Of a DNA stretch of 64,000 bases, positions 1,469 to 63,644 are shown in pieces. Source of the DNA: Penicillus capitatus (taxonomy: Eukaryota > Plantae > Chlorophyta); the NCBI GenBank assembly GCA_965649825.1, contig OZ287697.1:1908351-1972350 (forward strand), in the 5' to 3' direction. The notes under the pieces are model-generated. The model searched no databases. It saw only the letters and a program-made list of their open reading frames with translations, and was not told where the DNA came from. The position numbers and the translations under genes were made by a program. Positions within the stretch are counted from its first letter, which is position 1, and each line of letters opens with the position of its first letter.

Positions 1469-3870
1469 ATGACGAAGGTGCGACATCGTCGTCCGTCGGT
1501 CCTGGCGACTGGCCCAGTACCGTCCCTCAATGCGACACCGCGAAACCTGTCTGGCGTAGAAACGCAAGCAGCACGACCGTGTATCGGCCGCCAACAGGCG
1601 ACTGAGGAAGCAGCACATGATATCTTCTGTGCTCGCGACGAACGGTAAATCGCACAGCGGCTGCTTCGCGCACTTGGTGGCGTGACATGGTTGTCTGGAG
1701 CGCAGAGATGGCGGCGTCGAGTGCCTTTGGCGTTCTCAATCGACCCAACGGAAAATGGCGCGAACTGGGAGTTCGGATTCGATTCGAGCTGGAACTCGGA
1801 ACGAAGATGGTTGAGCGAGTGACGCGTCTGGCGCACGTCGAATTCTATGTAGCCTATCGTGCCGCCGTGGTAGCGGAAGAGCAGCGCGTTCAAGAGAGAA
1901 AGGAAGAGTTGGAGATCACTGGTCAAGGCACAAACCCAGTGCCGCGGCCAACAGACAAAGCGCTCACGGTCGTTCCTTATCCTTCCCTCGACGATCTGCT
2001 GCATTTCGTCTTGCAGTACATGATAGAGAACGGACTACTGTGTAACCAGGAGATCTTTCTCGGCCATGTCCCCGGCGTCAACATCGGAGACACGTTCAAT
2101 TACAAGCACGTGCATCGTGGCGTTATTCTTACGCTCGACATTCGATGCTGTGTAGAGTCCAGATGAAAGTGGTTGGACTGCATCGGCTCGTGATGGCCGG
2201 GATCGATTACGTGCCAGCCAACTACATCCGAGAGAATAGCCCGTCTCTTGCCGTGAGCGAACGTGCCTTCACGATGGACGTGTGGGACGAGGCAGAGTCT
2301 TTGCTGTAGATTTCGATTGTCTTGGCCGGCGGCTATGAAGATGACAAAGACGACGATGCCGAACTCATCTACACAGGACAAGGCGGAAACGATCTGCTCG
2401 GCAACCGTGCCCAGATCGGCGATCAGAAGCTCGATCGGGGAAATCTGGCATTGTATAACAATGCCGTCTATGGTGTGCCTGTCAGAGTGATTAAGAAAAA
2501 CGACAGAATCTTTATCTATGACGGTCTATGGGACGTACTGCAGATGATCAAGGTCGATTCCAGGCGATCTCGGCGACAGTCGCTGACAATAGTGCTTGCA
2601 GAAACGAGGCATCGAGGGGTACTACATCTATCAGTATCGATTACGAAGGTGTCCAGGACAGGAGCCGTCTTTGGCGAGGAAAGTGGCATTCAAGGAAGGG
2701 CAGAACTACCGTCACCCAGATTCCATCGGCTTTTCAGATCCAGACGAGATTTGTCCTGGTACAGCCGCCACATAGATGTTCATCTGATCTCAGAGCCGAT
2801 GTTCTGCGTCGAGATTTTACTCGAGGGGTCAATTCCAAAGCCGTTTCCGTCGCTAACAAAGTGGACGCCGAGTTGCCACCTGGGTTGAAGCTCGAAGATC
2901 TGCACGAGGATGTTCGGGTCATGAAGAGGTGGAGACCATCAACTGACCCGTTTGAATTCGGCGTGAAAATGCGATTGCACCACAACGTACCGGAACCGAC
3001 GGTCCCTCACGAAATTACCGAAGCCTCCAGCGAGGATCCACACAAATATCTTATGAAGCTTAATCACGGGTGACCACGACTGGCGATGCAGGCATTGCAT
3101 ATCCAGGATATGCGTTTCTAGATTTCTTCCTTACCAAGACAAAGGAACCCTGCATCATGCGATGTGTATTCTGTACGAGTGCGGCGCGTGGCTGCGCTGC
3201 AAAGATGGGCAGAAATGCCGTCAGTGCATTACATCCCATCCACCAAAATGGCGATTTCAGGTTCGCAGATCGCATCGTGATCGCTTTCGCATTTCGACCA
3301 TCGCTCAGATATTTAAGACGGCCAACAGAGGGTGGGGACTGAAGACGCTCGATCTCATTCCTGTCGGCAGTTTCGTCATGAAGTATATCGGCGCAGTACA
3401 TCGTGTGGAAGATCTGCCGCCGGACGATGTTTTTTCGTTCAACATGACGGAGCGACCGGACTACACAGACGATCACAAGTCTCACTCTCACTCTTTTGCA
3501 TCGGATGTGTCACTCTTTTCAGATGGCTGCCCACTGCCCGACACGTGGAAGCGGTGTATGGAGTGACGGGACGATACTATGGAAACCTCTTTCGCTTCAT
3601 CAACCATAGCTGTGATCCGAATTGCTTCATCCAGCCGGTGCTGTCACATCATCTCGATCGTTCCAGGCCAGATATCAACATCTTTGCCATGCGAACCGTT
3701 TTCCCAGGGGAGGAAATCTCCTACGACTACGGACAGTATCAAACGACGTCTCTTGACACAGACTTCTCAATTTCGACCCTTTCAGGGACTACGTGGAAAA
3801 ATGGCTGGGCAATGATTGCAGATGTGGAGCTGCCTGTTGTTCGAAGCGTGACGTTAAGGTGGAATCATGA
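1469..3870 (+). CDS. SUVH: SRA/YDG-SET histone H3K9 methyltransferase, KYP/SUVH4-like (multi-exon; start codon uncertain)
   Basis: Spliced: GHVPGVNIGDTFNYKVQMKVVGLH..AGIDY, GGYEDDKD..LIYTGQGG (SRA); FKTANRGWGL, RFINHSCDPN, EISYDYG (SET); CRCGAACC (post-SET); stop TGA 3870. Confidence 0.92.
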
Positions 3871-4062: not shown

Positions 4063-7000
4063 ATGAGGAGTTCTTGTTCGCGACTCTTCTTTCTTTCTCT
4101 ACTGGCGGCTCTCTATGTGACTCCCTTTCGAGCCTATGAGCAGAGCACGTCCACGCGAGACAGGTCTCACCAAATAAGCACTTCTGCACCGTATCTAAGC
4201 ATAGGCTACGTGTGGACAGATTGTCCGTTTCCTTACCCTTGCCGACTGTCGACGCACGATGGGGTCTGCTGAAAACGCACGGTCAGATTCTGATCACTCT
4301 TGATACGGCATTCTACAGAGAGGCGGAGGACGAGTGAGTGAGAAAGAGTGAGAATATAGGGGACTCGATGTTGGGTGATGATGATGTAGCGTACTGTTGT
4401 GGATGCGGCGGAAAGGAGGCCGATTCCTGCACACCATTCCGAAAGCGTCTTTGCTTTTTCTCGCAGATCCGACTCTGATAGAAGCTGCCAAGAAGCTCCC
4501 ACACGTTCAGTCCGTGGTCCGATCAGCCCTCTCCTCTTGTGTATGACCTCACGGGTCCTGTCTTTTCAGTCGCTCTACGACACGGCCGCCAAAATAGCGA
4601 AGACATGGCAACCCGTGTTCGAAGCGCTGGAGAATCATCCCGTGGAGTTTCTGGCAATGACGCCTTTGCACGATCTCGCTCTTTCCGAAGGGCATCCGTT
4701 CTTAGGCCAACTCTTCATCGATCAAACAGGTCACCCATTCACAGGCGCTCTCTTCTCCAAGACTGTGCGACAGGATCCACCGATCGCCTTGTGATTGAAG
4801 TGGGTTTCCCTCTCCTCCACAAAACCGCCGTGGACAACGAGGACGAGAATTACCGTCCGGCTCAGGCTGCCGCGGCAGATTGGTTGATACCTTTGAGAGA
4901 GCGCTTTGGACGGGACATTGATATGGAGCCCTTTCACCGACTGGTCGACATCTACGCTCCTCCGTCCATCGTGCCAGATCTCTTGGCTTGGCTGTCGGAG
5001 CAGAGCGCCGTGCATTGGCTGCAGCCCAAGACACGTATGACGATACATAACTGGCGGGCCAGTGGGATCATTCAGTCCGGCATTGCCCCTACAGAAGAGT
5101 CTGCCGCCATCGATGACGCCATCCATCCCATCTGGGCGGCCGGGATCCAAGGAGAAGGCCAGATTGTCGGCTGCGGCGATTCCGGCGTCGATGTTGACAG
5201 TTGTTTCTTCTACGATCCAGATCTCTCGATCTCCGATAACATTGAGAATTCAGCAGAGGCGCCGACAAGGATAACGGTCTCACTCTTCTTCGACAACGAC
5301 AAGCATCGAAAAATCCGCTACTACGGAAGCGCCTCAGATTTTTCAGATGGCGATGGTCACGGAACGCATGTGGCCGGAACACTCGTGGGCAATCCTTACA
5401 AGTCCCGTGACACGATGGCCGTCGCCAATCGCGGTATGGCACCAGAAGCCCGACTGGCTTTTCTGGATCTAGGCAGAAATTCGGGCACCAATACGTCCGA
5501 TTCGATTTACACGCCACAAGAGCTCTCTACGTATTACTATCCCATTACGTACGATAAAGGTGTTCGGATTCATTCCGACTCGTGGGGATCAAGCACGGCC
5601 GAGTATGATCATCTGGCTCAAGAGGTGGACAAATTTGCGTATGATCATCCGGATTTTCTTCCGATCTTTGCGGCTGGGAACTACGGTCAGTTGTCGTTTC
5701 GATATCTGACCACTGTCACATCACCTGCCGTGGCGAAGAACTGTATTTCGGTGGGCGCCACCCTCACCTCCAATCAACCAAGTAGTTTTTCAAACGACGA
5801 TATCGAAGCCTACCTCATCCAGATTCGCATCTCGGTTGCAGAGAGTGCGTCACCTCTTCGTACGGCATTTGGATATGATGTGACAGGTGTTATGTACAGG
5901 CGATGACGAAATGCGACAGTACAAGATTCTGGCGGCTGGCTTTGGCAAGAGCTGGGGGCGCCTGATCGAACAGAGCGCAGAAGAAGAGATTCCGTTGATT
6001 CGTGGCACACCACAAGCGGGATGCAGTACACTGAGCAGTGCCGTACGTGGGAAGATCGTGCTCGTCAGCCGAGGCGGCTGTCAATTCGTGCAAAAACTCA
6101 AGAACGCACAAGCCAAAGGTGCCCTTGGCATCATCGTAGGGAATAACGCCAACAATGGCTACTTCGAAATGGACCGACCGGATGACACGCCAGACTCAGA
6201 ACTGACGATTCCCATTGCATCGGTGCCGTTGTCTGTCAGCCGACAGTTACTCGAAGTACTGGACGCCAAACGCCAGACGACGCTGCGTGTCATGGAGAGA
6301 ACGGTGCCGGCGAATGCCTACGACAACATTGCGGATTTTTCGTCCAGTGGACCGACGATCGATTACCGCATCAAACCCGACATCGTGGCACCGGGTCGCA
6401 TCACTTCTGTCTGGGGAGATGGGTCGAAGCACAATGCCCCTGGACAGTGTCTTCTCAAAACGAGCTCCGGAACGTCGATGGCGACACCTGTAGTGGCAGG
6501 AGCGGCTGTTCTTGTCCGGCAGTACTTTACAGACGGATTCTACCCATCAGGCAAAAAGAATCCGAAAAACGCCTACCAGCCATCGGCAGCATTGATCAAA
6601 GCGACGCTGCTAGGCGGGGCGTTTCCAATGGACGGTTACACGGAGGCAGGGCTGCCGTTAGAACCGCCGCCATCTCCGCGACAAGGTTTTGGACGGGTGT
6701 ATCTCGAGACGTCGATTCCGGTGGTCGGATCACAGAAATGGAAAGAGGGTTGGCGACTGCAGGTCATCGATCGGGCAAGTTTAGCAAGGGACGCGTCGCA
6801 CGAGTACTGTGTCAGTGCCTTGGGTGGACCCATCCGGATCACCCTCGTCTGGACCGATCCGCCTGCCCTTGTCCAAGCCAACAGCTTTCTTGTGAACGAT
6901 CTCGATCTGTCCGTCCGTTCGGCTGGCCTCAAAGGACGGGTCCTATTGGGAAACGGTGTGCAGGATCGGGTGAACAACGTCGAACGTGTGCACGTCGATG

Positions 7001-16669: not shown

Positions 16670-16713
16670 CGAAGGTTCAGCTGAGCCCTGTCACATCATC
16701 TCTCTCTGCAACG
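16670..16713. promoter_or_regulatory. Minimal bidirectional promoter region containing GTCACATCA (16690)
   Basis: 44 bp between the divergent ATGs of ALDH12A1 and the RNase M5-like gene. Confidence 0.55.
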
Positions 16714-24881: not shown

Positions 24882-25065
24882 AGGGTTGAAAACGAATACG
24901 ACGCGGGTAGAGACAGAGAATGCAGCGCCCTACTGAGTCTAGGTCTCGGTACGTTAGCTGAAGGGTATGACGGCATGTGATGGGACAGCATAGCAACGGA
25001 CAGGACGTCCTGTCCGTGATGTGACGGACATCCGACCCAGCAGATAATGCGAGCGTGTGAGCAGG

Positions 25066-26732
25066 ATGGCCTCGTTCTTCGTATCGCTCGAAGGCGATGA
25101 GCGCAAACAGGTACCCGCCGCCTTCTGTGCGTTTTTTTGCGTTCTGTCCTCGTACTACACTCTGCTGCCGCTCAGAGACGAACTGGGTCTTCGGATTGGT
25201 GCGAATCTCGTGCCGTCGCAGGCAGACTGTATGTCATGGGTGGGTGGTATCTAGGAACGTCCTATCTCCCTGCGCTCTTTGTGGCATCACTTGTCGCGAC
25301 GACAGTGGCGGCGCCGTCAGCTAGTGTCTTTCTCAGCAGGCCAGGGCAGCCAAAGCCGCGTCTCCTGAGTCAGCTCTTCCTATGCGTCGCCGGTGTCCTG
25401 CTCTGTTTCTATCTCCTCTTTCGGTGCGTTCACGACACCGACGGCGCCGTCGTCTCTTCCGCATCCCATCAGCAAGCGACGAACGAAAGACCCTTGCCTG
25501 TTCGCGCATCTGGACGACTCGACCTGACAACGGCACAGCGAAGTATATTTGTGGCTTTCTATCTGTGGGTAATCCAATCGCTGACGATTGTGGCATGGAA
25601 CCTGTCGGCGTCCTGACAGGTCGGTGTCCAAAACCTCGTCTGCATTTCGTCTATCTGGGCACGGTGCGCCGAACTCTTCTCCAACGCATCTGCCAAACGA
25701 CTGTACGGTTTTATCGGAGCTGGATCCACTCTTGGTCAGATCTGCGGTTCAGCGCTCACGAAATACCTCCTGCACAAGACACGTGTGTCCCTCCCTTTCT
25801 CTCCAGGCATCCACCGTGTGAAATGTAGTCGTTGTATCTGACGGGCCGCCGCCTTACGACTTGATCCTTCTCTCTGCCGTCTTCATCGTCGCCGCCACTT
25901 TCTTCCTCTATCGACTCGACGGTCCGACGCAACGGGAGGCGCGATCTCGCAAGGCCCCAACGATGTCGCAGCTTCTGGATGGTTTCGGGTACGGCGATCG
26001 TTGCCGGACGATGGTCATGTGTGAAGCTATAGGCTGATCTGGAGATCGCCTTATTTGCTGCATCTCTGTGTCTACATGCTCGTCAACTACGCCGTCGCTT
26101 CTCAGTTCTACTTCGAAAAGGCGCTCGTTGTCGAAACCGCTTTGAATCCATCGCCACATCGCACGTCCTGGTTTGCGACGCTCAATCTCATCTCTGGAGC
26201 CTTCATCGCCGCAGCGCAGCTCACACTCACAGGCAGTCACCCCTCACCCCTCCTCCATCACACATACCTAACGCTCGATACAGGTCACCTGCTAACGCGT
26301 CTCGCCTTTACGACTGTCCTCTCCATTGCACCCATCGCCTGCGGACTGAGTATGGCCTTTGTCGCCGTCGCCGCCAAACCTGACATCATTGGTTCGTCTC
26401 GGAAACGGTTAACAAAGACTCCCTTGCGTTTCTGTATAGGAATGGCGGAGATCGTGCGCAAGATCCTCACCTTCGCTGTCGCTCGGCCCGCTCGAGAGAC
26501 ACTCTTCACCGTTCTCTCCGACGACGAGCAGTACAAAACAAAACTCCTCATCGACACGATCTTCCAGCGTCTGGGCGATGTTCTCGGCGCTCTGCTCTTT
26601 CAGCTGTTCCACGGCGTTCTCTCTTTTGGCCCGTGCGGCGTGGCCCTTGTCACCACATGTCTTTGTTTGGTGTGGGGCCTTGTCGGTTGGACACTCGCTC
26701 GGCGACATGCACTCCTCGTCTCGGTGACGTGA
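25066..26732 (+). CDS. TLC/NTT-like (ATP:ADP antiporter family, MFS fold) transporter (multi-exon)
   Basis: FFCVLSSYYTLLPLRDE, RLYGFIGAGSTLGQ, FAVARPARETLFTV..EQYKTKLLIDT..QRLGD. Confidence 0.88.
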
Positions 26733-26737
26733 CATCT

Positions 26738-28956
26738 ATGTTCTCGCGATGGTCGAACGGACAACAGGTTCGCGTGGTATACGTAAACGATCGAATCATT
26801 TCTTGACTCCAGAGCAGGTCCCGCGTTTCCACTGCGACCACTGCAAGCGCGACATCTCACGCAAGATACGCATCAAGTGTGCCGACTGCGCCGACTTTGA
26901 CCTCTGCGTCGAGTGCTTTGCTGTCGGCGTCGAGTCGCAAGAGCACAAGAAGACACATAGGTGCCGTCATGCATCGACCCCGCTGCACCCTCGAAACGGA
27001 TTTTGGCGAGCAGATATCGCGTGATTGATGACTTGAGCTTTGCCGTGTTTTCATCATCCTGGGGTGCCGACGAGGAATTGCTCTTCTTTGATGGGATCTG
27101 TGACTTTGGTATCAGTAACTGGGAAGCGGTGGCTCATGTTGTCGGCTCCAAATCGGCAGACGCATGCAAACAGCATTACATCGAGGTATGTTCGATCGCA
27201 GACCGTTACCATGACGGTTCTCACTCTTTGCCTCTCGGTCACTCTTTTGTGGCGGCAGCTCCTGGAGAAGCAGCATTGGCTGGACGATGAGCCTCTGCCT
27301 TCCGATCCACCGACGACCAAAGGCAACACCGTGATGGCAGATTCTCTCTAGAGGAGACGGACGGTGTGCTTACAGATGTCATGGCCTCTGCTTTTCCATC
27401 CAGTGTCTTTTCTGACGTGTTCGGTCCAAGTCCCAAAAACCTCTCACCTGCATCGAGCATTGATGGGACGGTCTCTTCTCTTACGGAGGATGAGAGGGAG
27501 ATGCCCAATGCACAGGAATGGATTCTGCCAGGAGTGGGAGAGACATTGAAGTCGACTGCGGCTGATGGCCATCCAGGGAGTGATGCCGATGGGACGTTGA
27601 TGGAATCAGATGCCGACATGGCATTGGACGACGGCAAGGAGGACCCACTGCCACCTCCAGAGCACACACCGCCCACGCCACCCATAGCAACAGGCATTTT
27701 CTCTTGGTTTAGCATCTAGGATAACCGTCGATGTCAGGGAATGCTGCTTTGGAGGATGAGACGTCGGACGAGGAGATGAAGGAAGACAGAGAGACAGAAG
27801 AGACAGGTCCAGCGCCGAGCGAAGCACCGGAGTGTGGTGGGAAGGCCGAGGCCGTTCCTGAGAAGCGTACCCCCTTCAAGCACGCATCCCTGCATCCTGT
27901 CCAAGGTCGCGCACCGATCGTCCTGACGATAACCAGTGCATAGCGTCGATGTCTGGGTGTGCACTAGGGCCGCCGCTTCCCGGCAGGAGTCTGAGCTCCT
28001 TTGATACCAATGCAGGGGAAGTGACTGGCTTCAATCCGTTTCGAAGAGAATTTGATCCTCCGTACGATGTCGGAGCCGAACAGATGATTGCGGATCTCGA
28101 ATTCCACGACGACGACCCGGAAGACGTCACCAGAGCAAAGCTCAAATTGCTGCACCTCTATCGATGGCGCGTCCACGAACGCGAACGCAGGTGAGTTCTC
28201 ACACATTTCTCACACTTTGGCCAGACATCTCTTCTCCAGAACGGAGCTGCTGAAGAAAAACGAATACGGATTGATGGATGTGCGGAAGATCATGGCGATG
28301 GAACGCGCTTGGAACGCAAGCGAACGCTTCGCCGACCTCCGTCCGTTTGCCCGGTCCCTTCACGCCACCCTCTCCTTCTTAGAAATGTCTTCCCTTCAGA
28401 TTCACAAGTCTGGAGAAGGTCGAACGCCTTGCCAAAGGACTGTGCTTTGAGCGGACGTTGCGTCGACGGATCCAGGAACTCCAAGAGGTAACAGGGGATG
28501 TATGCATCAGATGCCGGTGTCTATACAGCGTTTGCATCGCAGGCACGTGCGACAGGATGTCGCACTTTTGCCGAGATTCGATCCAGGAGCAAAGATGTTA
28601 AGGGACCGCGTTTTCCGGAACGGACGTCGGCTCAGCTGATCGGCAAATGGAAGCGCTGTCATCCAGAGCTCTCGGAAGATCTCGTGCATCGCACCTCGGT
28701 GCCAGAGCTCAGCGAAAGGGAGCGATCGTTCTGTTCAGAAGTGGGCTTCAGTCCGTGGCAATTTGCCGTTCTTCGCGATCGGCTGCTGCGCGAAGCGGAG
28801 GAAAGCGGCGGCCGGTTTTCGAAGATTCTCGTTCGGAGCTTCTTTCGCCTAGATACCTCGCAAGCTGTTAAGCTCTTCGATTTCTTCGTCAACGAAAAGA
28901 GAATCATCAATTCGGACAGAGATCTGATGCGAGATCCCAAAAAGAGCTGCCCTTAG
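26738..28956 (+). CDS. ADA2: Transcriptional adapter ADA2 (ZZ finger, SANT, SWIRM); start at 26738 or 26749
   Basis: HCDHC..IRIKCADCADFDLCVECF; WGADEELL..NWEAVAHVVGSK (SANT); GFNPFRREFDPPYDVGAE; C-terminal SWIRM. Confidence 0.94.
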
Positions 28957-30012: not shown

Positions 30013-30580
30013 CCTGACAGATGTAAAGATCCTTCCTTCTACGTATGTAACGGTGTCATTTCTCACTCTTTTTTTCAATCTACTTAACGTCACATCATTA
30101 CAGAAGATCACATAAAACAAACGTCTCCTTGCTAGAGGATGATCGCCCACCCCGTGCACTCAGCGTCATGATGTGACGTTTAGAACGTCGACGTCACCAG
30201 CGAATGTGCGTGCTGCCGCGTGGCTGATGTCAAGAAATCTTGATTCGACGATGCGCCACCATTCTCACCATTATTTTTTACAAATACAAAAGTGAGTATC
30301 ACCACGTCGCCCTCACCACCTTCGCAGTCAGAGCATTGCGCAATGTGGTTGATGCAATGCCAGCAGCGCATGCAGATTGATCCACACGACACAGAATATC
30401 CACCATCAACCTTTCCCTTTCAATCCTCTCGATAAAATCACCCTCGAGTCGCGGAAGAAAGTCACATGTTCAAACAGAAAACAGCACACCTAACACTTCT
30501 GATAACGGGTCTGCGTTATACAGCCGCAGTTATCCCTCGCTAGCCGCTCTTTTACGACAGACTCCTTCAAAAGAATAGGT

Positions 30581-31246
30581 TCAGGACGTAACGTCACTGT
30601 ATTGTTCCGCCGCCACCGCCGCCATGCGATCCGTCAGCTGTGCACGGAGTTCTTGAATCTCACGTTCTTTCTCTTCGATCTCGCGCTTCTTTTCGTTGAA
30701 GAGATCGGCGCATCGAGCGTAAAGCGTCTTTCGGCTGTGTGTTGCGTCCTTGACTTCTTGTTTCAATGCTTGCATGTCTTGTTCGATTCCCCTCTGAGCT
30801 TCGCGATTTTCAACCGCCATAACCGATACACAGGCCGACAGCTCGCAGGCAGTCGTGAGAAATGAAAGGATACAGGGGGCCACTTCGGTCGGGTGCAGTA
30901 AAATGCGGCCCATTCCTCGCAGCTGCGCATCGGACAATGGCCAAGACCATCGTAACTCACGAGCGTCGTCGTTCTCCACCGAAAACTCAAAATTGAATAC
31001 CGTCACCGAATCTGAATACCCCAATGCCTCACGGGCTCTTTCTACCCACGTCTCATGGCCGACGGCAGTCGATGGTGGACTCGTACAACGCACTGCTCTC
31101 CAGGCTTTGGCCCCGTCCGTTGCATCCACATCAAATTCAGCGTCGTTCCACCATTTTACTAGCAGATATAGACTACCCCCTTCTTCCGTATCAATACGTT
31201 TACAGACTGTCTTCGCGATGGCCGCCATGACGGATGAAGATGACAT
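30581..31246 (-). CDS. XRCC4: DNA repair protein XRCC4-like
   Basis: Beta-rich head (FDVDATDGAKAW) plus long helix with LYARCADLFNEKKREI, matching the ligase-IV-binding segment. Confidence 0.78.
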   Translation of the reverse strand: MSSSSVMAAIAKTVCKRIDTEEGGSLYLLVKWWNDAEFDVDATDGAKAWRAVRCTSPPSTAVGHETWVERAREALGYSDSVTVFNFEFSVENDDARELRWSWPLSDAQLRGMGRILLHPTEVAPCILSFLTTACELSACVSVMAVENREAQRGIEQDMQALKQEVKDATHSRKTLYARCADLFNEKKREIEEKEREIQELRAQLTDRMAAVAAEQYSDVTS

Positions 31247-31335
31247 AAACGAGACAGGATGTCGTTTGAGGTTGAACCGTTTGGCCGACAGCAGAAGCCG
31301 TTGACTGGACGGCGCGAGATGAGTCATTTGCCGTC

Positions 31336-32535
31336 ATGGGCGACGCACGCGAACGCGCATCCCGCTCAAAAGAACGCTCTTCGCGTCGGCATCGTTCTCG
31401 TTCGAGGTCTCGCGACCGACATCGCCGACGACGTGACCGCTCGCCCCGAACACGCGAACGGAGCAACAGTCGAGAAGACGGACGCCGTCGACGTCGACAC
31501 TCGCGCGAACGCAAACACGAACGCACACGCGTCGACTCTCGCTCGCCGCGGCGCAGTCGAACGCGCAAGTCTGCTTTCAGTGGTCCAGGAGAGGGCACAG
31601 AGGTCCAGGAAAGGCACTCAATGGGAAGACGGTTTTGATGGGTGGGCCTGTTATAGGCTCAGTCACTGCAGCAACTCCAGCAGCAGCAACTCCATCGTCA
31701 GTTACTGGCTCAACAGCTGCTTCTGCAGCAGAGCGCCTTGTCTGGCACCACTGCTCTGATCGCGAACAAGAAACAAAGAGAGGTGTATGTGGGGAACCTC
31801 ACGATCGGCATCGTCAATGCAGACATGCTGCGTGAGCTTTTCAACGGCGCCCTGTCCTCTCTCGTGCCGGATCCGGTGACGAATCCTCCAGTCGTGAGCG
31901 TGAATATGGATGCTTCCGGTGTGTTATCTCTGATGCGTGTCGGCGGTGATATGATGTGATGTGACAGGTCGGTTTGGTTTTGTGGAGATGCGCAGTGAGG
32001 AACTGGCCAATGCAGCGATGCAGATGGACAAAGTCGAGCTCTGTGGACGTCACGTCAACATCGGAAGACCACGTGGCTACATCGAACCTCCGACCAGTGT
32101 CGTGGCCCAGACCAAGCTCGGTATGGCTGAGCAATTCGCCAAGACCCTCTCTGGCAGTGCCTCCAAGACCGTCCTTCTGGAGAACATGCTTTCGCCCGAA
32201 GACCTCAATCAGCCCAATGCCCGAGATGAGGTGAGATCCAGCTTCGTTAAGGAAGTGCTGAGAGGGTCGTGTGGTGTGCGCAGTTGATGGATGAGGTGCG
32301 ATCCGAATGTGAGAAATGGGCGTCGGTTTTAGGTGTGGCCTGTCCCACTCCGCCCGAATCTGTCCAGGGCGTTGCCGCTTCGAGAGTGTATGTCAAGTTA
32401 TCGACGTCCGATGAGGCCAAGAGGACAAAAGAGTTTATGGATGGTCGTAGTTTCGACAATAATACCGTGACATGTACTTTGGTGCCGGACACCGATTTCG
32501 CTAGGGCTGAAAAGGGCGAGTGGATCACGGCATGA
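31336..32535 (+). CDS. U2AF large-subunit-like splicing factor (RS domain, Q-rich linker, one RRM, UHM)
   Basis: RS repeats; QREVYVGNL..GRFGFVEMRSEELANAAM..RPRGY; UHM VLLENM..EVRSECEKW..DGRSFDNN. Confidence 0.85.
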
Positions 32536-32800
32536 TGATGTGACAGCTAGCATCAAGAACCCCTCGTCCTGCATCGACTGAAGCGCCCCGTTTGGCGTAG
32601 CTGGTGAGATTTTGTGGCTCTGTGTCTATGATTCCCGGGACTAATCTGTGTTTTTTGTGTTTGTGTGCTGTGCTTGTGTGTGACTGTTTGTGTGGACAGA
32701 TGATGTCAGCTCTCGGCAACGTCAGACTGTGAATCTCAAACGCAGCTTCTGCTGTAATAGATGCCTGCGTTATCTCAACCACCCACCCGACCATTAGCTC

Positions 32801-34053
32801 ATGCAGTATACGGCCAGGTCTTGCATCGATGTTGCCTTGCGGAGCTTCGCTTCGAAGGCGGCACTTCCCCTTGCGACGATCAAGAAACTGCGCGATCTGA
32901 GTGGCGCGCCGATCGTTGACGTCAAGAAGGCGCTTGAAGAGACGCAGTACGATTTTGGTAAGCGTTGTTGAAAAAGAACGGTGAAGGAGAAAGGGTTTTA
33001 GATTCGGCATATGAGGCGTTGCGACTCAAAGGACTGGCGGCCGCCGACAAGAAGGTCTGTCTGCATACACTGCTGCGCCGCGTCGGTTAAGTGGACGTTA
33101 GGCGACGCGGTTGGCGACAGAAGGACTGGTCGGCGTCGCAGCGACGACGCAGAGAGCGGCAGTAGTGGAAGTGCGTATCTGCCGTGGCATCGAACTCGCA
33201 CAGGAGAACGGCGTAGGTGAACTGCGAAACGGACTTCGTGGCAAGGAATGAAAAATTCGGCAGCTTTGTGCAAAGCGTGGCCCAGGCAGTTCTCGACCAG
33301 GGAACCGCATACGGTAGATTTCGCCCTGTAAAAGCCACCGTTGTGTATGGCATGGCATCATAGGCGCAACACAGCAGCTCACTTCCGAAACGTTTCTGCA
33401 GTTTAGGATGCCCACTCCATCATCCACCATGTCTGTTTATCGTCACTCTTGAAATGATGTGACAGATGATGTAAGACAACAGGATCGAAGAGGCAGCAAA
33501 GGTGTTGTCTGGATCGATCCGTGAGAAGATTCACGTGCGACGGGCTTTTCTTCTGTCCTCCGCTGGACGTCTATACACTTACTGTCACAATGCGCCGCCG
33601 GGAGGCGTATCTGGACTCGGCAAGATTGCTTCCGTCGTGTCGATCGAGGCACCGAACGGGGAATCTTTGGAAGATCGTGCGATCCAGGCATTGCAGGAAA
33701 CTGCGTTGGGACAGCAACTGGCGATGCATGTCGCCGGAATGAAACCGCTTTACCTTGATGCGACTTCGATCGATGCCGAGCACTTGACCAAAGAACGCAC
33801 CCTTCTGCACCAACAAGCGTCCAAATCGGGCAAACCGTCAAACATCGTGGAGAAGATCGTGGAAGGACGACTGAAAAAATTCTACGAAGAATTCTGCCTA
33901 TTGGATCAGAAATTTGTCCTCGACGACGATCGGACCGTCGCCCAAGTCCTCCTTCAGTTTTCGCAAGACCATGACCTCCCCCATCCACTCACCATCAGCG
34001 CCTTTTCTCGCATGCAGTGTGGTGAGGGCATAGATCTGACATCCGACGTTTAA
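32801..34053 (+). CDS. TSFM: Elongation factor Ts, mitochondrial (multi-exon; start approximate)
   Basis: IKKLRDLSGAPIVDVKKALEE, EGLVGV, EVNCETDFVARN, LAMHVAGMKP, SGKPSNIVEKIVEGRLKKFYEE.CLLDQ. Confidence 0.94.
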
Positions 34054-34079
34054 GACAGACGTTTTTTGAAGGTGATACA

Positions 34080-35104
34080 ATGTCGACGCTCCCATCTTTC
34101 CTGCTGACGCGCGCGAGCAGTACGTTTGTCGTCGGATACCATTTCCCATGTCTCGACGGCATCTTCGCCGCGCTCGTCGCTCGGGAGAAGTTCAGACAGA
34201 TGGACCGCCATTGCCGTTTCGTTCCGCTCAGCAGTTCGCACGTTCCTCAAGTCGAGCGCCTATCGCTCCGCCGCAACGACACGGCTCTGCTGTTGGATTT
34301 CGCCGGAACTCGGGACTTCATCGAGCGCCTTGCCCAGTCCTGTCTTCGCGTCGTCGTTGTGGATCACCACGTCACGACACACGAAGCACTGAACAGCGCT
34401 CCGTTGCCGTCCAACGTCGAAGTGCATTACGATCTCAATCGCTGTGCGGCGTCGCTGGCTTTGGACGTCTTTGCACCGGTCCGACTCTCCCCACACATAC
34501 GACAGATGATCAAGTAACCAACACACGTCGCCTGTTGACACACAGCAGCGTGGACGGATGGACTGTGTGCAGACTGGTCGAAGATTCGGATCTTTGGAGA
34601 ATGGCTTTGCCCCAGACGCGATGGTTCCGTGCCGGTATGGGCGCGCTCAACCTCGACTACGATGCTCAGAGGCATCCCCAGATTTTTGACGCACTGCTCG
34701 CGTTGGATCTCGATGCCGTGTTGAAGAAAGGTCAATCGGTGCATTCCCAGCAGAGCATAGAAGTGGACAGTGCGCTGCGGACGGCGTTTCGGGTGGATCT
34801 TGGTGGACGCGAGATGCCGTGGGGTCAGTGTCTTGCCGTCGAAGGCTTGCAGTTCCGTCGTCTGCGCAGCGATATCGGCAATGTATTGGCACATGAGTCC
34901 CACAGACAAGGCATGCGCGGCATTGGCGTCGTGGCCTACTGTGAGCCACAGCTTCATGATCGCTCCAAGATCAAAGTGAGCTTTCGAAGCATCGAAGCCG
35001 AAGACACGACGACGATATCCGTCGCCCTGGGTGGAGGAGGACACAAGAATGCAAGCTCCTGTGTGATCGGCCTCACAGAGTTTCAGCGATGGCGGCTGCG
35101 TTAA
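34080..35104 (+). CDS. DHH/DHHA1-family phosphoesterase (two exons)
   Basis: YHFPCLDGIFAA, VVVVDHH, EDSDLW, VSFRS, LGGGGHKNASS. Confidence 0.88.
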
Positions 35105-48512: not shown

Positions 48513-48630
48513 TTTTCGAAACCATTCGGTGAGTCCACTCATCTTTGGAGGACGTAACAAACAACGACGATACGTCTAACGCGACGGGGTCTCAAAAGGA
48601 TGTCTTTGTCTCTGTTGATGTGACGGCCGT
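48513..48630. promoter_or_regulatory. Short bidirectional promoter region with TGATGTGAC (48616)
   Basis: Divergent ATGs of the RING E3 and DUS3 lie about 118 bp apart. Confidence 0.5.
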
Positions 48631-50579
48631 ATGGAACGGAAACGAAAAGAAGTGGCGTCTATCAAACCGGCATATCTCAAAGCGACGAGAACCGAAAAGA
48701 AAATCGCCGACTCGACGCCGCATTCGCAGATTACGACGGAGAAAAAATCGAAGAAGCGGCTGAAACGCGTAGACAGGACGCTGATGACAGACTGTCGCCA
48801 TGGCGATGCTGGTGTGGATGACAGGAGAGCAGAGAACGGATCGGAACGGAACTCTGTCATGCTTTTGTGAAAGGAGAATGCGATCGCGAAGCGCAGAAGT
48901 GCCGCTTCTCTCATGACATAGAAGCTTATCTGGCCCAGAAACCGCCGCCGCTACCGGGAACGTGTATTTTTCATGACGTCCAGGGCACCTGTCCCTACGG
49001 TGAGATGCTGTTCTCAGAAGAGCTGTTGTTAGCAGAGAGGCTCAGGGATGACGTGTCGTTTTGATCATGGGATATTGGAGAGGGATGTGTCTGGAGAGGG
49101 TTTGCCCAAGGTGACGCCTGTTATGGAGCTGCAGAATCGATTGTCGATCGAAACGCGGAGATCGTTGCGAAAAGGATCTTACGATTACAGCCGAGCCGAT
49201 ACTGTCGTGACATCGATGAGCCTGTCACATCAGCAAAAGAGTGATGGCGATGAGGGAGTCGATGTCCCGCTGAGACAGGAAGAGAAAAAGCGCGTCGATT
49301 TTGGCGGACTGCTCTACTTGGCGCCGCTAACCACTTTGGGCAATCTACCGTTCCGCAGAATGTGTGTTGGCTATGGGGCTGATGTGACGTGCAGCGAGAT
49401 GGCTCTGGCCACGAACCTGATTCAAGGACAGCAGACAGAGTGGGCTCTGGTCAAACGCCATCCCAGCGAAAAGCTCTTTGGCATCCAAGTCCCTCCAGCA
49501 TCTCCAATTGATCTTTTGGATCTATGGCAACGTGGATGAGCAGATCTGTGGCGGCTACGTGGATAAGCTGACGAGATGTGGGCAGTTGATGGAAGACGTC
49601 TGTCAGATGGACTTTATTGATGTGAATCTCGGCTGTCCCATCGACTCAATCTGCCAAAGAGGCGCTGGATCTTCTCTTCTCCTAAGGCCTCAACGCATCA
49701 AGCTTCTTTCCCAATCGCTCTCTTCGGTACTGACCTGTCCTCTGACGCTCAAAATGCGAAAAGGATACCATGACCATTCTGATGTGACGTCTCTATGCAT
49801 CGCGTCATGCACGCCATCCAGTTACAAGTCCTGTAGGTGGTGCATCGATTTCTCCCTGACGTTTCGAAATGGGGTGTCTCAGCCGTGACATTGCACGGCC
49901 GGACGCGAGCCCAGCGCTATACCAAAGAGGCAGACTGGATGTACATCTACTCCTGTGCCAAAGAGACCACCGATGTCCAGTTCATCGGAAACGGCGATAT
50001 TTTCTCCTTTACGGAATGGGAAGATCGACTGGCAGCTTCCGAAGGATCGCTGACGACCTGCATGATCGGCAGAGCTGCGCTCATCAAACCATGGATCTTT
50101 ACAGGTATCATCCAGATCCTCGCGCCAATGCTGAAACCGTCACAGAAATCAAGGAACGTCGTCATTGGGACATCTCTGCCAGTGAGAGGCTCGATATGTT
50201 GAAGCTCTTCTGTTCGAGAGGACTGGAGCATTGGGGATCGGATGCTCGAGGCGTCGAAACGACAAGGCAGGCTCCTGGCGGCTGCACCGTCTGTCGATCT
50301 TTACGCCCCTGTATCGTGTGTAGGCGATTTCTGTTGGAATGGCTGAGTTTTCTGTACCGTTACATACCGGTAGGGATACTTGAGGAGCTGCCGCAGACAA
50401 TTGCCTTGCGGCCTCCCGCAGCGTTCGGGCGAAATGATCTCGAAACGCTCTTTATGAGCGAGAGTGCACAGGACTGGGTGAAAATCAGCGAGCGGCTGCT
50501 TGGACCGGCACCCAAGGGCTTTACTTTTTGCCCTAAGCACAAGTCGAATGCATACAGTGTCGGCGAAGTGACGTCTTAG
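48631..50579 (+). CDS. DUS3: tRNA-dihydrouridine(47) synthase DUS3-like with CCCH fingers (multi-exon)
   Basis: CRFSHD..C (CCCH), [69 protein letters not shown]. Confidence 0.95.
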
Positions 50580-58254: not shown

Positions 58255-58654
58255 GCCAAAAGCAGAACTGGCACGAGTTTCGCATTGAGTATACAACATA
58301 AGTGGACGTCCAGATTGAGCGAAACATAAAAAACTGACTATTGGCTGTATTGATTTGATCAAGTGGCAACCGACAGCACCACCGATCGGTTCCCATTATT
58401 GCTCAAGATATCGAAGAAAGAAAGTGTACTGTGTAAGAATAACGTTGTATGCTTCCTCGCTCGAACTGTTCACTGCGAAAACTGGCAGAAGTCGCTAAGA
58501 GTGAGTCATATGGACAGTAGATTCCCCTCCCTTATGTCCGCGCGTCTTATAGTAAATCTACGAGCGAATAAGCCGTGCAGAATTGGCTCTAAGTGTTAAA
58601 GTGAATGAAAGGGTCAGTCGTTTTGTCGCCGTTGGCAGATTGTTGTTCTTCTTG

Positions 58655-59400
58655 TCAGTCGTCACCCACGTCCTTGGCCTCCTTGTCTGCACTGTTGCTC
58701 GAATGAACACATATAAAAGAGATACGCACTATCGCAAACGTGTCGTGTTTGTATGCTTCTTCGAGGTCTTCGATGTTAGAACGGATCGTGGGCAAGGGCA
58801 CGTGTCCAGCATCTCTACCACTGTTGACAGACAGGTCCTCGCCTTCTTCATCGCTGACACTGTCGCTGTTGTAGCTTGCCTTCGATGGTAGCACCACTCA
58901 GCTAAGCACTCAAGGCTTCTTTTCCCGGACTCTTGCAAAACTGCTGCAGTTCACGGATTGCTTCAACTGTCTTTTGGTTGCCTTCGCCCATTGCATAGAT
59001 CTCGTATGCGGTGTCTTGGAACGCATAAAGAACATCTGAGTCATCAAACTACCACTCTTCAAGAGTGTCTTGGCTTCTCCTTAGCTCTACGGGTTTCTCG
59101 ACGGCCGTTCCGCGCACAACCTCTCTCGAGCTCCAAGTTGCCAACAGCTTTATTTCTTGGATGACTCTGTATATCAGAGCTTTTTGCTCACTCTTTTGTT
59201 TGAACCCATGTTGCTTTTGCGCCACCACATTGCATACGTTCCGAAGGGTTCACACCTTGCCTCTTCTCTGAGTACCGATTCTCTTGCTGCCATCGGATTT
59301 CGGAGCTAACGTACCACTCTCTTCGCTTCACGTCCACATTGTCAACAGCGTTTTGGGCTTCTTTGTATGCAGTCTTGCGGAATTCGGCACCGCTGTCACA
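58655..59400 (-). CDS. Possible hypothetical gene; exon structure unresolved
   Basis: Exon-like pieces AEFRKTAYKEAQNAVDNV, VLYAFQDTAYEIYAMGEGNQKTVEAIRELQQF, NIEDLEEAYKH. Confidence 0.35.
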
Positions 59401-60068
59401 TCGGAAGCCGGCAGCGTGTCCGGTCCGCGGTGTCAGAACCGTTACCGCACACCCGTCAGGTAGTGTGATGCGTAAAAACGAACGTGAGGTAGAAAACAGA
59501 GTTTGTTGCAGAATACGAATTGTGTTTGCAAAACATCGTATTTATACTACCCAGCATGACGTTATGATGCCGTCATGCCTCTTGTAATGATGTGACCGGT
59601 GTTTCTTCCTTTCTTCTTCCCGCTTCATCTTCAGGTCCACGACAGTAGTGTTGAAAGAAATAGCAACCCAAGAATGGCTACTGTAAGGGTGCCCCCTGTC
59701 GCCTCGGGTCTTCTGGCGAGAGGACGCTGCTGTCGCGCCAACTGTCCCTGTGGCACCACGCCAGCAGAACAATCACTAGCGAACGTATGACGAGAGGCGT
59801 GAGGAGAGGCTTACATAATGACGTGACAGACCAATGACCGGGGTATTAAAGGCGAGAACTGTTCTGTCGTATCGTCCAGCTATGTAAATAGCATTGCGAA
59901 CGAGTTTCGCTGCGCGACTCGCCATCCGGCCCGGACTCGGCCGCCCGATCGACGTTCACAGAACCATCAGATATCCAGCGCAACATCTTGGAGGACTCAA
60001 ATACCGGAAGCCATAGCAAACTCATCCACATCACATGCAAAGCACATCTCAACAACCGGGTCTGTGAC

Positions 60069-60879
60069 TTATGGCATACAGGTCCCAAAGGAAAGGCGCT
60101 CAAACAAACTTGCCGGAGGCCCAAATGGAACGAACTTGGTTGATTCACTTCTCAAGATAGAACACCACCAGATTGAGCCGATTTCTCTCTGGCCACTTCC
60201 CGACACGTGACTACTTATTATGCTTTCATTGCCCGGATGCGGATCAGTCAAATTAATGTCGGCATGGTGGATGCCACGTGGACGAGACTCGGGACCCATC
60301 TTAAGCTGTCCACTGACGGGTATGCATGAACGGTTCTGGCCGCGCGGACCGGACAGGCTGTCCGCTTCCTGACGTGACAGGAGTCCGCGTGGGCCAAGGG
60401 TATTTATGTGACAGGCCGCACCATGCTGTAGTCTTTGCATCGACTCAGCATCGTCTCTTCCGACTTCTTATACGCATCGGCGCGTTCGCGTCGCGCCAGT
60501 TGTCTGCGTATCCCCGACATCCACACCTGTCCCTCGCTTCGCAATGTGCATCTTCTGTCCGATCAGGACTTTCCAACAACTCTGTCGATCTGTTATCTGT
60601 CTCGATTCGATGCTTTTCTCGCATCTCTTAATCCGACATAATCTCACTCTCTTGGCCAGCGAACAGAGAACCATGGGACATACCTAAGTGTGAACTCCCA
60701 TGAGAGACCCCCACATAATAATAATGAAACCGAAGGAAGGTTTGCCGTCGTGCGAGAAAAGTGGCTTCATATTTGGCGAAGTTCTCTCTCGTGAGCTTTG
60801 GTCTTTTACTAAGACTGCCCAGACGCTTTATCGCCACATCCACCAGTTGCACCGCCGCCGTCAACCGCAGGACGCACAT
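60069..60879 (-). pseudogene. Possible decayed protein-kinase-like fragment
   Basis: VDVAIKRL..ENFAKYEATFLA resembles kinase subdomains II-III; no intact HRD/DFG; stops in all downstream frames. Confidence 0.2.
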
Positions 60880-61571
60880 AGAAAAGTGATCTGCACAGAG
60901 CCATGGCGTTGTTCTCTTTGAGAAGCTTTCCTCGAGAGAGTGGAATAGGCATCAAGGATCAGGTGCTTCAAAATGTCTGTTTCTTCGTCGAAGCAGATCG
61001 ATGATTAGACTGCGTCAGTAAGGGATCATAAGACGCTCGCTTTAAGTGTTTGAAGATAGTTGAACAGTCACACTGCATGACAAACGAGAGATTCACCCTT
61101 TCCATTTTGAAAACAGAAGTGCACTCAATCTCACATCTTTTTTCTTCTGTGAGCAATCGTCCCCTTCGCTAAATTTCAGTGCAGCTGAATCGTATTGTCA
61201 CGTGAGAGGGATGCAGTTCACCGATAGCAACGGTGTATTTCTCGATTGGGAACAGCGAACCCGTTGTCACATGCATATCGGTCTCGCCGTTGTTGTACTG
61301 ATGTGACAGGTATGGTGCGATCGCGAACAGCAGAGGAGGATGCGTTGTGAGGAAATGACGTAGAGCTAAGTTCGCGTCTTGAGGACGTGGTCTTCAAAGG
61401 TCCACTGATAGACAGAGCTGCGTAGCGGGCTTATTTGTTAAGGCGAGACATTTCCGGTAGACACAACTAACTTCTGCAAGAAAAAGTGGCCAATCAGAAG
61501 CCGCAAAAGTGCGACTGTACATTCTGTGCAAAGATATGGGAGTATGTAAAAGGAACATACCCTCCGGCTGA

Positions 61572-62444
61572 ATGTTGTATTCGTGCTTGTGTTCATTGTC
61601 TCCTCGTAGCTTCGAAAGGCCAAATCTTATTACTGCCTTCAAAACGAAGATGTACGGCATGTGTCCCTACAACACGGGTTCCTTCAACGCGCAGAAGCCA
61701 ACTCCGGGCTGGTTCAACGTGGATCCCGTCAATCCGGCGATGGAAATCAACACGGAGATAACGGAGATGCCACCACCTGGACGGTTCGGAGTAAAACCCC
61801 GCAGGCCGAAGACGAAACCAGTTGAAGACCCGTGGAAGGAATTCCTTTCTCCGAAAGCGAAAGATTTGCGTCTTCAGATTCTTCACAAAGGGCAGATGAA
61901 GGCATTTCGCAAAGACCGAGATAGACAGCTACGGAACGGCGTCAGGCGTCGAAACCATCGCATTCGGCGCTCCCGGCCGTTTCGATATGTCGCCCCTCGA
62001 GAAACGCTAGCAAGCATTGCGAGCTGTATTTCAAAGAAAAGTATGGAGTACGTCTACGACTTGGTAAAGGAGGCAGGAAGGCACTTTGCGAAACGCACAT
62101 GGGAACGTGCCTGGGGAATGGAGGAAGCCATAGAGGAAGCCGACGACGCTGCCGACGGTGTGAGTGTGAGCGGCGACACAGAGTACTTCTCTGCCGCCTC
62201 ACAGTTCTCTGCCGACGAGGAAGACGTCGTTTCGATGCACGGAGAACGCATGGAGAGCGTGCAGGCAACGCCTCCGGTTGTGCCTTTTGAGCAAGTAGTT
62301 CGCAATGTTTTTCCTGGTCCGGTGCGTCGACCGGACCCACCACCTACTGTAGCAGACGTCTACAGCCATGATTCTATGCAGCAGGATAACGACGAGGCCT
62401 CGGCGACGGAAATTCATCGCCGCAAGAGATGTCGTTTCTTTTGA
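61572..62444 (+). CDS. Hypothetical protein, last exon (upstream exons probably about 61310-61540)
   Basis: 290-codon open frame with basic and acidic low-complexity blocks, ending RRKRCRFF. Confidence 0.65.
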   Translation: MLYSCLCSLSPRSFERPNLITAFKTKMYGMCPYNTGSFNAQKPTPGWFNVDPVNPAMEINTEITEMPPPGRFGVKPRRPKTKPVEDPWKEFLSPKAKDLRLQILHKGQMKAFRKDRDRQLRNGVRRRNHRIRRSRPFRYVAPRETLASIASCISKKSMEYVYDLVKEAGRHFAKRTWERAWGMEEAIEEADDAADGVSVSGDTEYFSAASQFSADEEDVVSMHGERMESVQATPPVVPFEQVVRNVFPGPVRRPDPPPTVADVYSHDSMQQDNDEASATEIHRRKRCRFF

Positions 62445-62505
62445 ATCGTCAGACCAGTCGCACTTACCTCAATGACGGCTTCCGGCGCGAGGAAGATCTG
62501 CGTTG

Positions 62506-63410
62506 TTACTGGACTCCAAGAGAAGATCCTTCCTGTGTGAAGTCACGGCCATGCACAAGGCCTTTCGTCTGAAAACAAGATGGGCATGCAAGCGATACAA
62601 GAGGCGCATGGTTGCTCTCGTAGCCATGTTTACACAGTTCGTCCCCCACGGGGCAGACGGCGTCGCTCTGGCAGCACGTCCTCTCCACGATGGAGTCGAT
62701 CAAACTGGTGAGCATGTTATGACATGCACAGCCGTGCCCGCAGTCGAAATTGGACGCCTATCGCTCGGGTAGCACGGCGCTTTTTCGGAGGCGTTGGGTG
62801 TGCAACAGGCTTTGATGTCGACTAGCTATCGACTTTGACAGAGTATCCTGTTGGACGACCTCAATGTTCTGCTTTCAACTTGTCAATAAATCGTTTCATA
62901 TGAAGCTCGAGTCGTTCGTTCTCGAATCCCCAAGGCCATGTACAAACATGCTGTGTAAACGAAAGGTGTTTGCAGCTGGGTGTGTGTTCACGGCGCGCGT
63001 TAGCGTTTTTGACCTCCGCACGGGAACACGGGTGTCGATAGTCGATCAACTCTGGGAGAGACGCAGGGGTCGTCGGTCGCAATTCGAGACAGCTTCAACA
63101 TCGTGCTCCGTGCGATTTCTTTGAAGACGCCGCTCTCTCTTTTCTCGAACGCCGGATAGTCGCTCGCGTCGCTCAACGTACTCGTCTGCTTTGAACTTAA
63201 ATTTAGATACCCCACGCTGCATTGCTTCCCCTTGCGTACTGCCCGACGAGTCCGCAATTTGCGGAGAGGTGATTCAATCGCATCACAGCTCCGGAAGCGG
63301 AAGGCTTCCAGAGAATGAACGAGAGCATCCACGAGTGCATCGCAGATTCGTCAGATTTCTTACCGTCCTTACGGCTTTTGGTACTGAATAGCATACCACC
63401 GTCTGTGTTT
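62506..63410 (-). CDS. Possible hypothetical gene with Cys-rich C-terminal part; model unresolved
   Basis: Exon-like pieces EAMQRGVSKFKFKADEYVERRE.. and DCGHGCAC..CCQSDAVCP. Confidence 0.25.
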
Positions 63411-63644
63411 GTCCCTTTGAGTGACCCCGTGTGATTCGGCGCGGCATGATCGGAGCGGTCGGTGTTTGTGTTTTGATAGAGACGTTACATCATCACGATG
63501 ACGGAAGCGGATTCAAAGCGATGTCAACATTCTTCACCAGCCAACCAACCGCCCAACCACGCACAAAGATCCATCCTTATTGTCCCGCATCCTCATGGCT
63601 CCTTGCGAAAATGAACATGACCGTCACTGTCATCGGCATTCTCT

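Follow-up and report, generated by a model that had tools for sequence, protein, structure and literature searches.

How are two eukaryotic genes expressed when they lie on the same strand and only 16 nt separate the stop codon of one from the start codon of the next? The question is raised by a transporter gene and the ADA2 gene downstream of it in a 64,000-nucleotide stretch of the Penicillus capitatus genome (assembly GCA_965649825.1, contig OZ287697.1, positions 1,908,351 to 1,972,350 of the forward strand), which we call the window and whose positions are counted from its first letter. A sequence-only reading of this DNA had placed the two genes 5-16 nt apart and proposed that they share a bicistronic mRNA or, alternatively, that the coding exon upstream contains a promoter for ADA2. 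Our analysis favors the latter: with a probability of about 0.62, we suggest that these are two separate genes with overlapping transcription units, in which ADA2 would carry its own start element on the stop codon of the transporter.

The order given in the sequence-only reading, transporter then ADA2 on the same strand, is borne out by Pfam. The transporter (25066-26732, plus strand) is MFS/TLC ATP:ADP-antiporter-like, with matches to MFS_1 (4.4e-12, 46 bits) and TLC (1.7e-9, 37.5 bits) that both exceed the curated cut-offs; its substrate class is predicted from family membership only. In our hand-built model it encodes 456 amino acids in seven exons (25066-25198, 25255-25568, 25620-25782, 25829-25988, 26033-26232, 26284-26391 and 26440-26732) separated by introns of 44-56 nt. 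Proteins named AAA family ATP:ADP antiporter align with this model at 30-37% identity over 97-98% of its length, and because these bacterial-type homologues cover it so fully, the TGA at 26730-26732 (plus strand), which closes the last exon and had already been read as the stop, is the natural end of the transporter. Two side observations concern this gene. It contains introns, its relatives are almost all of bacterial type (AAA family ATP:ADP antiporter or MFS, 30-37% identity), and it may have been acquired horizontally long ago or derive from an organelle. The segment at 26233-26283 is 51 nt long and in frame, with GC at its start and AG at its end, and could be read as a GC-AG intron or, alternatively, as inserted coding sequence (GSHPSPLLHHTYLTLDT).

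ADA2 (26749-28956, plus strand, stop codon at 28954-28956) combines ZZ, SANT/Myb and TADA2A-like third domains with a SWIRM-like C-terminal open reading frame (ORF). The Pfam matches are to ZZ_ADA2 (PF25299, 2.7e-15), Myb/SANT (PF00249, 1.1e-8) and the TADA2A-like third domain (PF22941, 5.8e-15); the C-terminal ORF (28498-28956) has no Pfam match at E <= 0.01 and is 67% conserved over 127 amino acids with one of the relatives, L002, whose ADA2 exons are collinear with those of the window by tblastx. The plus-strand introns of the model include 26961-27013, 27186-27258 and 27331-27375, and exon 1 (26749-26960) runs from the true start codon (MVERTTGSRGIRKRS...) to the ZZ finger.

The position of this start codon determines how short the spacer is. 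The sequence-only reading had left open a start at 26749 or one at 26738, the latter joined to the ZZ finger by a 50-nt GT-AG intron. Both ATGs exist, and so does the GT-AG stretch (26768-26817, plus strand), but the stretch is conserved coding sequence: it encodes GSRGIRKRSNHFLTPEQ, which is kept as protein in six relatives. Six homologous ORFs (P0001, P0002 and P0012-P0015), all from other assemblies, retain the N-terminal peptide MVERTTGSRGIRKRS..L(A/T)PEQVPRFHCD. Over codons 1-28, the window and L004 differ by 15 synonymous and 4 non-synonymous codon differences, with 17 of the 22 nucleotide changes at third positions, and the N-terminal indels of L002, L007 and L008 are all in frame. Since the relatives conserve the unspliced reading from 26749, the putative intron is coding, ADA2 starts at 26749 and the spacer measures 16 nt. 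The start at 26738 with its 50-nt intron is ruled out by the protein- and codon-level conservation of 26768-26817; this ATG is out of frame, opens a mini-ORF of 22 codons (26738-26806, plus strand) and is missing in L004, and the 5-nt version of the gap falls with it. A scan of JGI metagenomes for further ADA2 loci yielded ZZ-finger relatives that are all distant and lack the MVERTT N-terminus.

Comparison across species shows which parts of this junction are constant. Transporter and ADA2 are adjacent in four of seven species, with spacers of 16-20 nt and the transporter stop always within the sequence TGAYGTGAC. In the window (spacer 26733-26748, plus strand, without an AG) and in its sister species (L001), the stop is the second TGA of TGACGTGAC and the spacer is 16 nt long; in L007 it is the second TGA of TGATGTGAC, with a spacer of 20 nt, and in L004 the first TGA of TGATGTGAC, with a spacer of 17 nt. 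The C-terminal tail of the transporter after W(T/K)LA(R/Q)(R)H likewise differs by species (ALLVSVT, VEAMM, GMR). The upstream context of ADA2 is another one in the remaining three species, so that the gene order, conservation of which had been suggested as a check, holds only in part. In L002 a TRAPP/Bet3-like gene on the minus strand (5261-5601; identified by eye from its ORF translation) lies about 400 nt away, head-to-head with ADA2, and downstream synteny is retained (ADA2 ... U2AF65-like ... EF-Ts); a kinesin gene lies upstream in L003, and tandem repeats only in L008. The sister species is represented by a metagenomic contig (4.08 Mb) of 82-85% nucleotide identity that is collinear with the window over 16.6-37.1 kb and 46.9-58.3 kb.

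These junctions also bear on the idea that the two frames make one fused protein through an unrecognised intron, stop read-through or a frameshift, which the sequence-only reading had named as a finding that would overturn it. A crude gene finder did join both genes by a 148-nt intron (26670-26817), but it was unreliable overall, and such an intron would remove both the conserved C-terminus of the transporter and the conserved N-terminus of ADA2. With spacers of 16, 17 and 20 nt the two frames stand in no fixed relation to each other, and read-through or frameshift fusion is therefore excluded as a conserved mechanism; moreover, ADA2 occurs without the transporter in three species. We consider a fused protein extremely improbable.

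The most consistent feature of the junction is a short element, TGACGTGACA (26725-26734, plus strand), which consists of a TGATGTGAC variant followed by a purine. Its first nine bases, TGACGTGAC (26725-26733), are the motif variant that had correctly been seen over the stop codon. The element overlaps the transporter stop, ends 14 nt before the ADA2 ATG and is identical in the sister species. When six junctions are aligned, among them those of two species without an upstream transporter, the columns before the ATG that never vary are T26725, A26727 and the TGACA at 26730-26734; from the end of this TGACA core it is 9-18 nt to the ADA2 start codon. ADA2 of L002 retains TGACA 9 nt before its ATG (region 6036-6057, which carries TGACATGACA) although its neighbor is on the opposite strand, and L008 retains TTTGACA upstream of ADA2, with repeats beyond; in neither is the sequence further upstream related to that of the window. 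Because it is kept where the upstream neighbor differs, including the opposite-strand gene of L002, the element belongs to ADA2 and not to the transporter. We propose that it is an ADA2 initiator or an element close to the transcription start site (TSS). As the T-A--TGACA pattern stays with ADA2 when the neighbor changes, an ADA2 promoter inside the upstream coding exon appears to be the alternative of the sequence-only reading that fits best.

We envisage the following scenario. Under extreme compactness of the genome, the transcription units of the transporter and ADA2 would have come to overlap. The TGAYGTGAC-A element, with its TGACA core 9-18 nt before the ATG, would set the start of ADA2 transcription, presumably at the pyrimidine-purine step on its 3′ edge, leaving a leader of some 10-20 nt. 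The transporter would have come to abut ADA2 in the lineage of the window, its frame running on to the TGA inside the element; variable stop registers, spacers (16, 16, 17 and 20 nt) and tails are what would be expected if a pre-existing ADA2 signal dictates the stop. The transporter mRNA would then have no private 3′ untranslated region (UTR), its 3′ end forming inside ADA2 or its transcript reading through ADA2, and the ADA2 protein would be translated from ADA2's own mRNA.

A TSS at the element is, however, only one way to account for its conservation. The ADA2 promoter and TSS could lie further upstream inside the transporter, with a longer 5′ UTR extending over transporter exons and TGACA acting as a 5′-UTR or translation-context element. 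The distance between element and ATG is variable (9-18 nt), the final 60 nt of the transporter show unusually high conservation (93%) with the sister species, and copies of the 9-mer occur in transcribed contexts (introns and coding sequence), all of which would suit such an arrangement. The longer leader would, on the other hand, take in the out-of-frame ATGs at 26705 and 26738, and the unrelated sequence beyond the element in L002 and L008 speaks against a promoter there. We regard an upstream start as unlikely, though worth keeping in mind.

The bicistronic mRNA of the sequence-only reading has to be weighed against the same junctions. In this scenario both ORFs would be carried exclusively by one mRNA from the transporter promoter, and ADA2 would be reached by leaky scanning or by termination and reinitiation across 16 nt. 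A spacer of this length is too short for a conventional 3′ UTR, promoter and 5′ UTR; the adjacency with 16-20 nt is kept in four species; the best named protein matches are to green algae and plants; and proven green-algal cases have very short inter-ORF spacers (14 bp, even overlaps; PMC11291117). Exclusively bicistronic nuclear loci do occur in Chlamydomonas, Chromochloris and Auxenochlorella (PMC7896298, PMC11291117), where upstream ORFs have medians of 444-600 nt (PMC7896298), the Kozak context of the first ORF is weak, and AUGs are depleted before the second, which is read by leaky scanning (PMC7896298, PMC11291117). The present locus has none of the leaky-scanning features. Its first ORF is long (1371 nt) and its ATG context is strong (agcaggATGgc, with A at -3 and G at +4, scored against the general eukaryotic rule, from which a species-specific consensus may differ). 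The spliced 1387-nt stretch before the ADA2 ATG holds 12 ATGs, eleven beyond the first ORF's own, against 13.3 expected from a first-order Markov model, and thus shows no depletion. Reinitiation after long ORFs is inefficient (PMC11291117), and RNA folding at the junction is no more stable than that of shuffled sequences (z = 0.13). Adjacency is lost in three of seven species, in which ADA2 and its N-terminus are kept, and the head-to-head layout of L002 makes a transcript shared with a same-strand upstream gene impossible there, yet the element is present. We therefore doubt that ADA2 is expressed from a bicistron, although a physical read-through transcript over both ORFs may exist.

An action of the element at 5′ ends is supported by related copies at other gene starts. 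TGATGTGAC or a close variant lies 4-48 nt before start codons, in sense orientation, at the transporter (25017), aldehyde dehydrogenase (ALDH; 16698, minus strand), DnaJ (41343) and Dus (49203, a variant) genes. The transporter copy (25017-25025, plus strand) lies 41 nt before its ATG, in a 184-nt head-to-head spacer shared with a minus-strand AP2-like gene, and is identical in the sister species though the flanks diverge (41/60); L004 has GTGTGACAG 12 nt before its transporter ATG. In head-to-head spacers the motif is not the 3′ signal of an upstream gene, which supports a role at 5′ ends. Tight packing also recurs in this genome, as seen in a second tandem pair: the EF-Ts stop (34051-34053) and the start of a DHH gene (34080) are separated by a spacer of 26 nt (22 nt in the sister species). 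As a side observation, the last EF-Ts codons (window 34038-34082) contain GACATCCGAC, a 10-mer that recurs at 25027-25036, after the motif copy that precedes the transporter. As general initiator words, GTGACATC and GACATCCGAC were both dropped, since neither is enriched.

Several points weigh against the view that ADA2 has its own start element in an overlapping unit. Both the TSS and the 3′ end of the transporter mRNA are predicted from DNA sequence, and no transcript-derived sequence of the window species or the sister species was among the homologue-search matches. The 9-mer is missing at many gene starts of the window (S8, both LRR genes, SUN, SNF2 and U2AF65-like), and some of its copies lie elsewhere, following stop codons, at the 3′ ends of introns or within the coding sequence of either strand. 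A tight spacer kept in four species could, in addition, reflect functional coupling of the two genes.

The distribution of the 9-mer should thus be considered as a whole. No other 9-mer of the window is as over-represented as TGATGTGAC: it has 27 exact copies where length alone predicts about 0.5, and the next unrelated word reaches 11; for TGACGTGAC with one mismatch allowed there are 55 matches in the window against 24 expected. A purine follows GAC in 24 of the 27 copies. The density of about one copy per 2.4 kb (0.42 per kb) is equal in the window and the sister species, where 14 of 16 orthologous copies are identical and several form conserved islands in diverged flanks; the 9-mer is absent from L002 and L003. 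Sites include 3643-3651, 5876-5884, 16690-16698, 25017-25025, 30089-30097 and 30169-30177, and further along 31957-31965, 32536-32544, 33455-33463, 48616-48624 and 59588-59596. There are copies in clear coding sequence on either strand (SET domain, 3643; S8 'VTSPA', 5715; LRR, 19287; Dus, 49380), a copy in an EF-Ts intron (33455) and copies directly after stop codons (32536, after the U2AF65-like gene, and 59588). No single role, whether initiator, terminator, branch site or transcription-factor site, fits all copies.

The intron copies bring in a further explanation, in which a polycistronic precursor would be cut at the motif into two mRNAs in an operon-like manner, by RNA cleavage or spliced-leader trans-splicing. 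At least one certain cis-intron ends in TGATGTGACAG, namely the 49-nt intron at 31919-31967 of the U2AF65-like gene (ATG 31336, stop 32533-32535), which splits the RNP1 GRFGFVEM; a second probably does so as well, a TGATGTGAC copy lying probably at the 3′ end of an S8 intron. AG directly follows 13 of 31 motif copies, and the junction of L004 reads TGATGTGACAG. An AG is, however, present in the spacer of L004 only and lacking in those of the window, L001 and L007, and the first AG after the motif in the window falls inside ADA2 coding sequence. Head-to-head genes also carry the motif, and the window contains no spliced-leader or other RNA family, Rfam and tRNA scans having returned no match. 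Precursor processing at the motif is accordingly very unlikely in our estimation.

A more speculative proposal is that TGAYGTGAC followed by a purine is a bifunctional gene-boundary signal of this lineage, whose 9-10 bases would both end the upstream message, through the stop codon and 3′-end formation or through cleavage of a precursor, and launch the downstream one. Tandem genes such as transporter and ADA2 would then come from a dicistronic precursor or be coupled by stop-restart at the element. We hold this to be improbable; if true, eukaryotic genes would here be packed in a way that has so far not been described. A general role of the motif in polyadenylation or termination was rejected, as it is missing at most well-defined gene ends (ADA2, S8, MutY, Dus and SNF2) and occurs in head-to-head spacers.

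Further observations on the 9-mer concern its arrangement. Its preferred strand switches along the window, independently of host-gene orientation: up to 17 kb the minus strand holds 8 of 11 copies, and beyond 19 kb the plus strand holds 16 of 20; the SET and S8 genes are plus-strand genes within the minus-rich stretch. Copies are clumped and tend to occur in pairs with 30-290 nt between them, and none lie in two stretches of 8-9.5 kb. Collinearity with the sister contig is lost over the 5.2 kb at 58283-63461, in whose place the contig has 8.5 kb of unrelated sequence; this part of the window holds copies at 59588, 59819, 60370 and 61299. A second enriched word, TCTCACTCTTT / TCACTCTT (7-11 copies), is found in the 3′ portions of introns and precedes two TGATGTGAC copies by 2-4 nt, with occurrences at 27186-27258, 30060-30085, 33441-33450 and 49233-49245; it may represent a branch-site plus pyrimidine-tract signal. 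We found no conservation asymmetry around the 9-mer. Searches of the literature returned primers only for the 9-mer itself and nothing relevant for compact-genome motifs. Three more general approaches were of little use: an intron test of motif copies by flanking long ORFs was too permissive to inform, synonymous and non-synonymous differences from the sister species, scored for every ORF, discriminated too weakly between sense and antisense frames, and the models of a de novo gene map (codon log-odds filter and Viterbi finder) were left unused, codon bias being weak and neighbors fused.

The window as a whole is eukaryotic nuclear DNA and gene-dense, with a GC content of about 52% and many short GT-AG introns of 44-73 nt. 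A Pfam scan of its long ORFs identified an SRA-SET methyltransferase, an S8 subtilase with PA domain, F-box/LRR proteins, an aldehyde dehydrogenase, MutY, an AP2-like protein, a U2AF65-like RRM protein, EF-Ts, a DHH protein, a SUN-family protein, RPB9, DnaJ, Dus and a RAD5/CHR28-like SNF2 helicase. The best named matches of the SNF2 protein are to green algae and land plants (Trebouxia, Coccomyxa, CHR28), at only about 40% identity; this one protein tentatively suggests a host of the green lineage or a similar protist. At 31227-31338 a minus-strand XRCC4-like gene (a weak Pfam match) and the U2AF65-like gene form a head-to-head pair; a distance of 8 nt between their starts, counted from Met 31327, was dropped, as the L002-conserved Met 31229 suggests about 106 nt.

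If transporter and ADA2 are indeed separate, overlapping units, their junction would be an evolutionarily replicated case, seen in four species, of how closely eukaryotic genes can pack. For the annotation of compact genomes of the algal type, it cautions against inventing short introns to save an upstream ATG, and spacing alone is insufficient to call bicistrons. The 9-mer is more intriguing than the junction, as TGATGTGAC gives tangible access to the signals that mark promoters, gene boundaries or splice sites in this lineage.

How does the locus compare with known systems? It shares with the green-algal bicistrons two unrelated same-strand ORFs, a very short spacer, collinearity kept in several species and a probable green-lineage host; the features that fit this class are limited to the short spacer and a gene order that is conserved in part. 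It differs in the length of the first ORF (1371 nt against medians of 444-600 nt), in its strong rather than weak Kozak context and in the undepleted AUGs, and its second ORF, ADA2, has its own conserved upstream element that survives a change of neighbor; the present case is, moreover, known from DNA alone.

Short control sequences at transcription starts offer a second comparison. A pyrimidine-purine (YR) step is typical of transcription starts, and core promoters contain initiator-type elements. Like these, the element upstream of ADA2 is a short sense sequence at a near-fixed small distance before the ATG, with a C-purine step at its 3′ edge. Unlike them, the 9-mer is missing at many gene starts and present in introns and coding sequence, its role at the TSS is a prediction, and to our knowledge it resembles no described initiator. 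In yeast, Reb1-type general regulatory factor or roadblock sites lie between closely spaced tandem genes. A boundary site of this kind could likewise halt the upstream polymerase and set the downstream promoter, which would suit a site overlapping a stop codon; the likeness is pure analogy, and the intragenic copies of the 9-mer would be hard to reconcile with roadblock termination.

A further parallel is provided by compact genomes, in which control signals can lie inside the neighboring gene and transcripts enter adjacent genes, whose downstream ORF is not translated from them. Williams et al. (2005, as cited in PMC6009652) reportedly described such overlapping and multigene transcripts for the compacted genomes of microsporidia and nucleomorphs. 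There, as here, spacers are too short for UTRs and promoters. The window, by contrast, keeps many spliceosomal introns of 44-73 nt and proteins of normal length, its other spacers measure 100-700 nt, so that compaction is patchy, and transcript overlap is predicted rather than observed. A downstream gene that keeps its own 5′ signal whatever its neighbor is also what we find at ADA2, in six species and three upstream contexts. The locus thus appears to belong to a known kind, that of overlapping and abutting genes in compact eukaryotic genomes, and what sets it apart is a stop codon placed within the putative start element of the neighboring gene.

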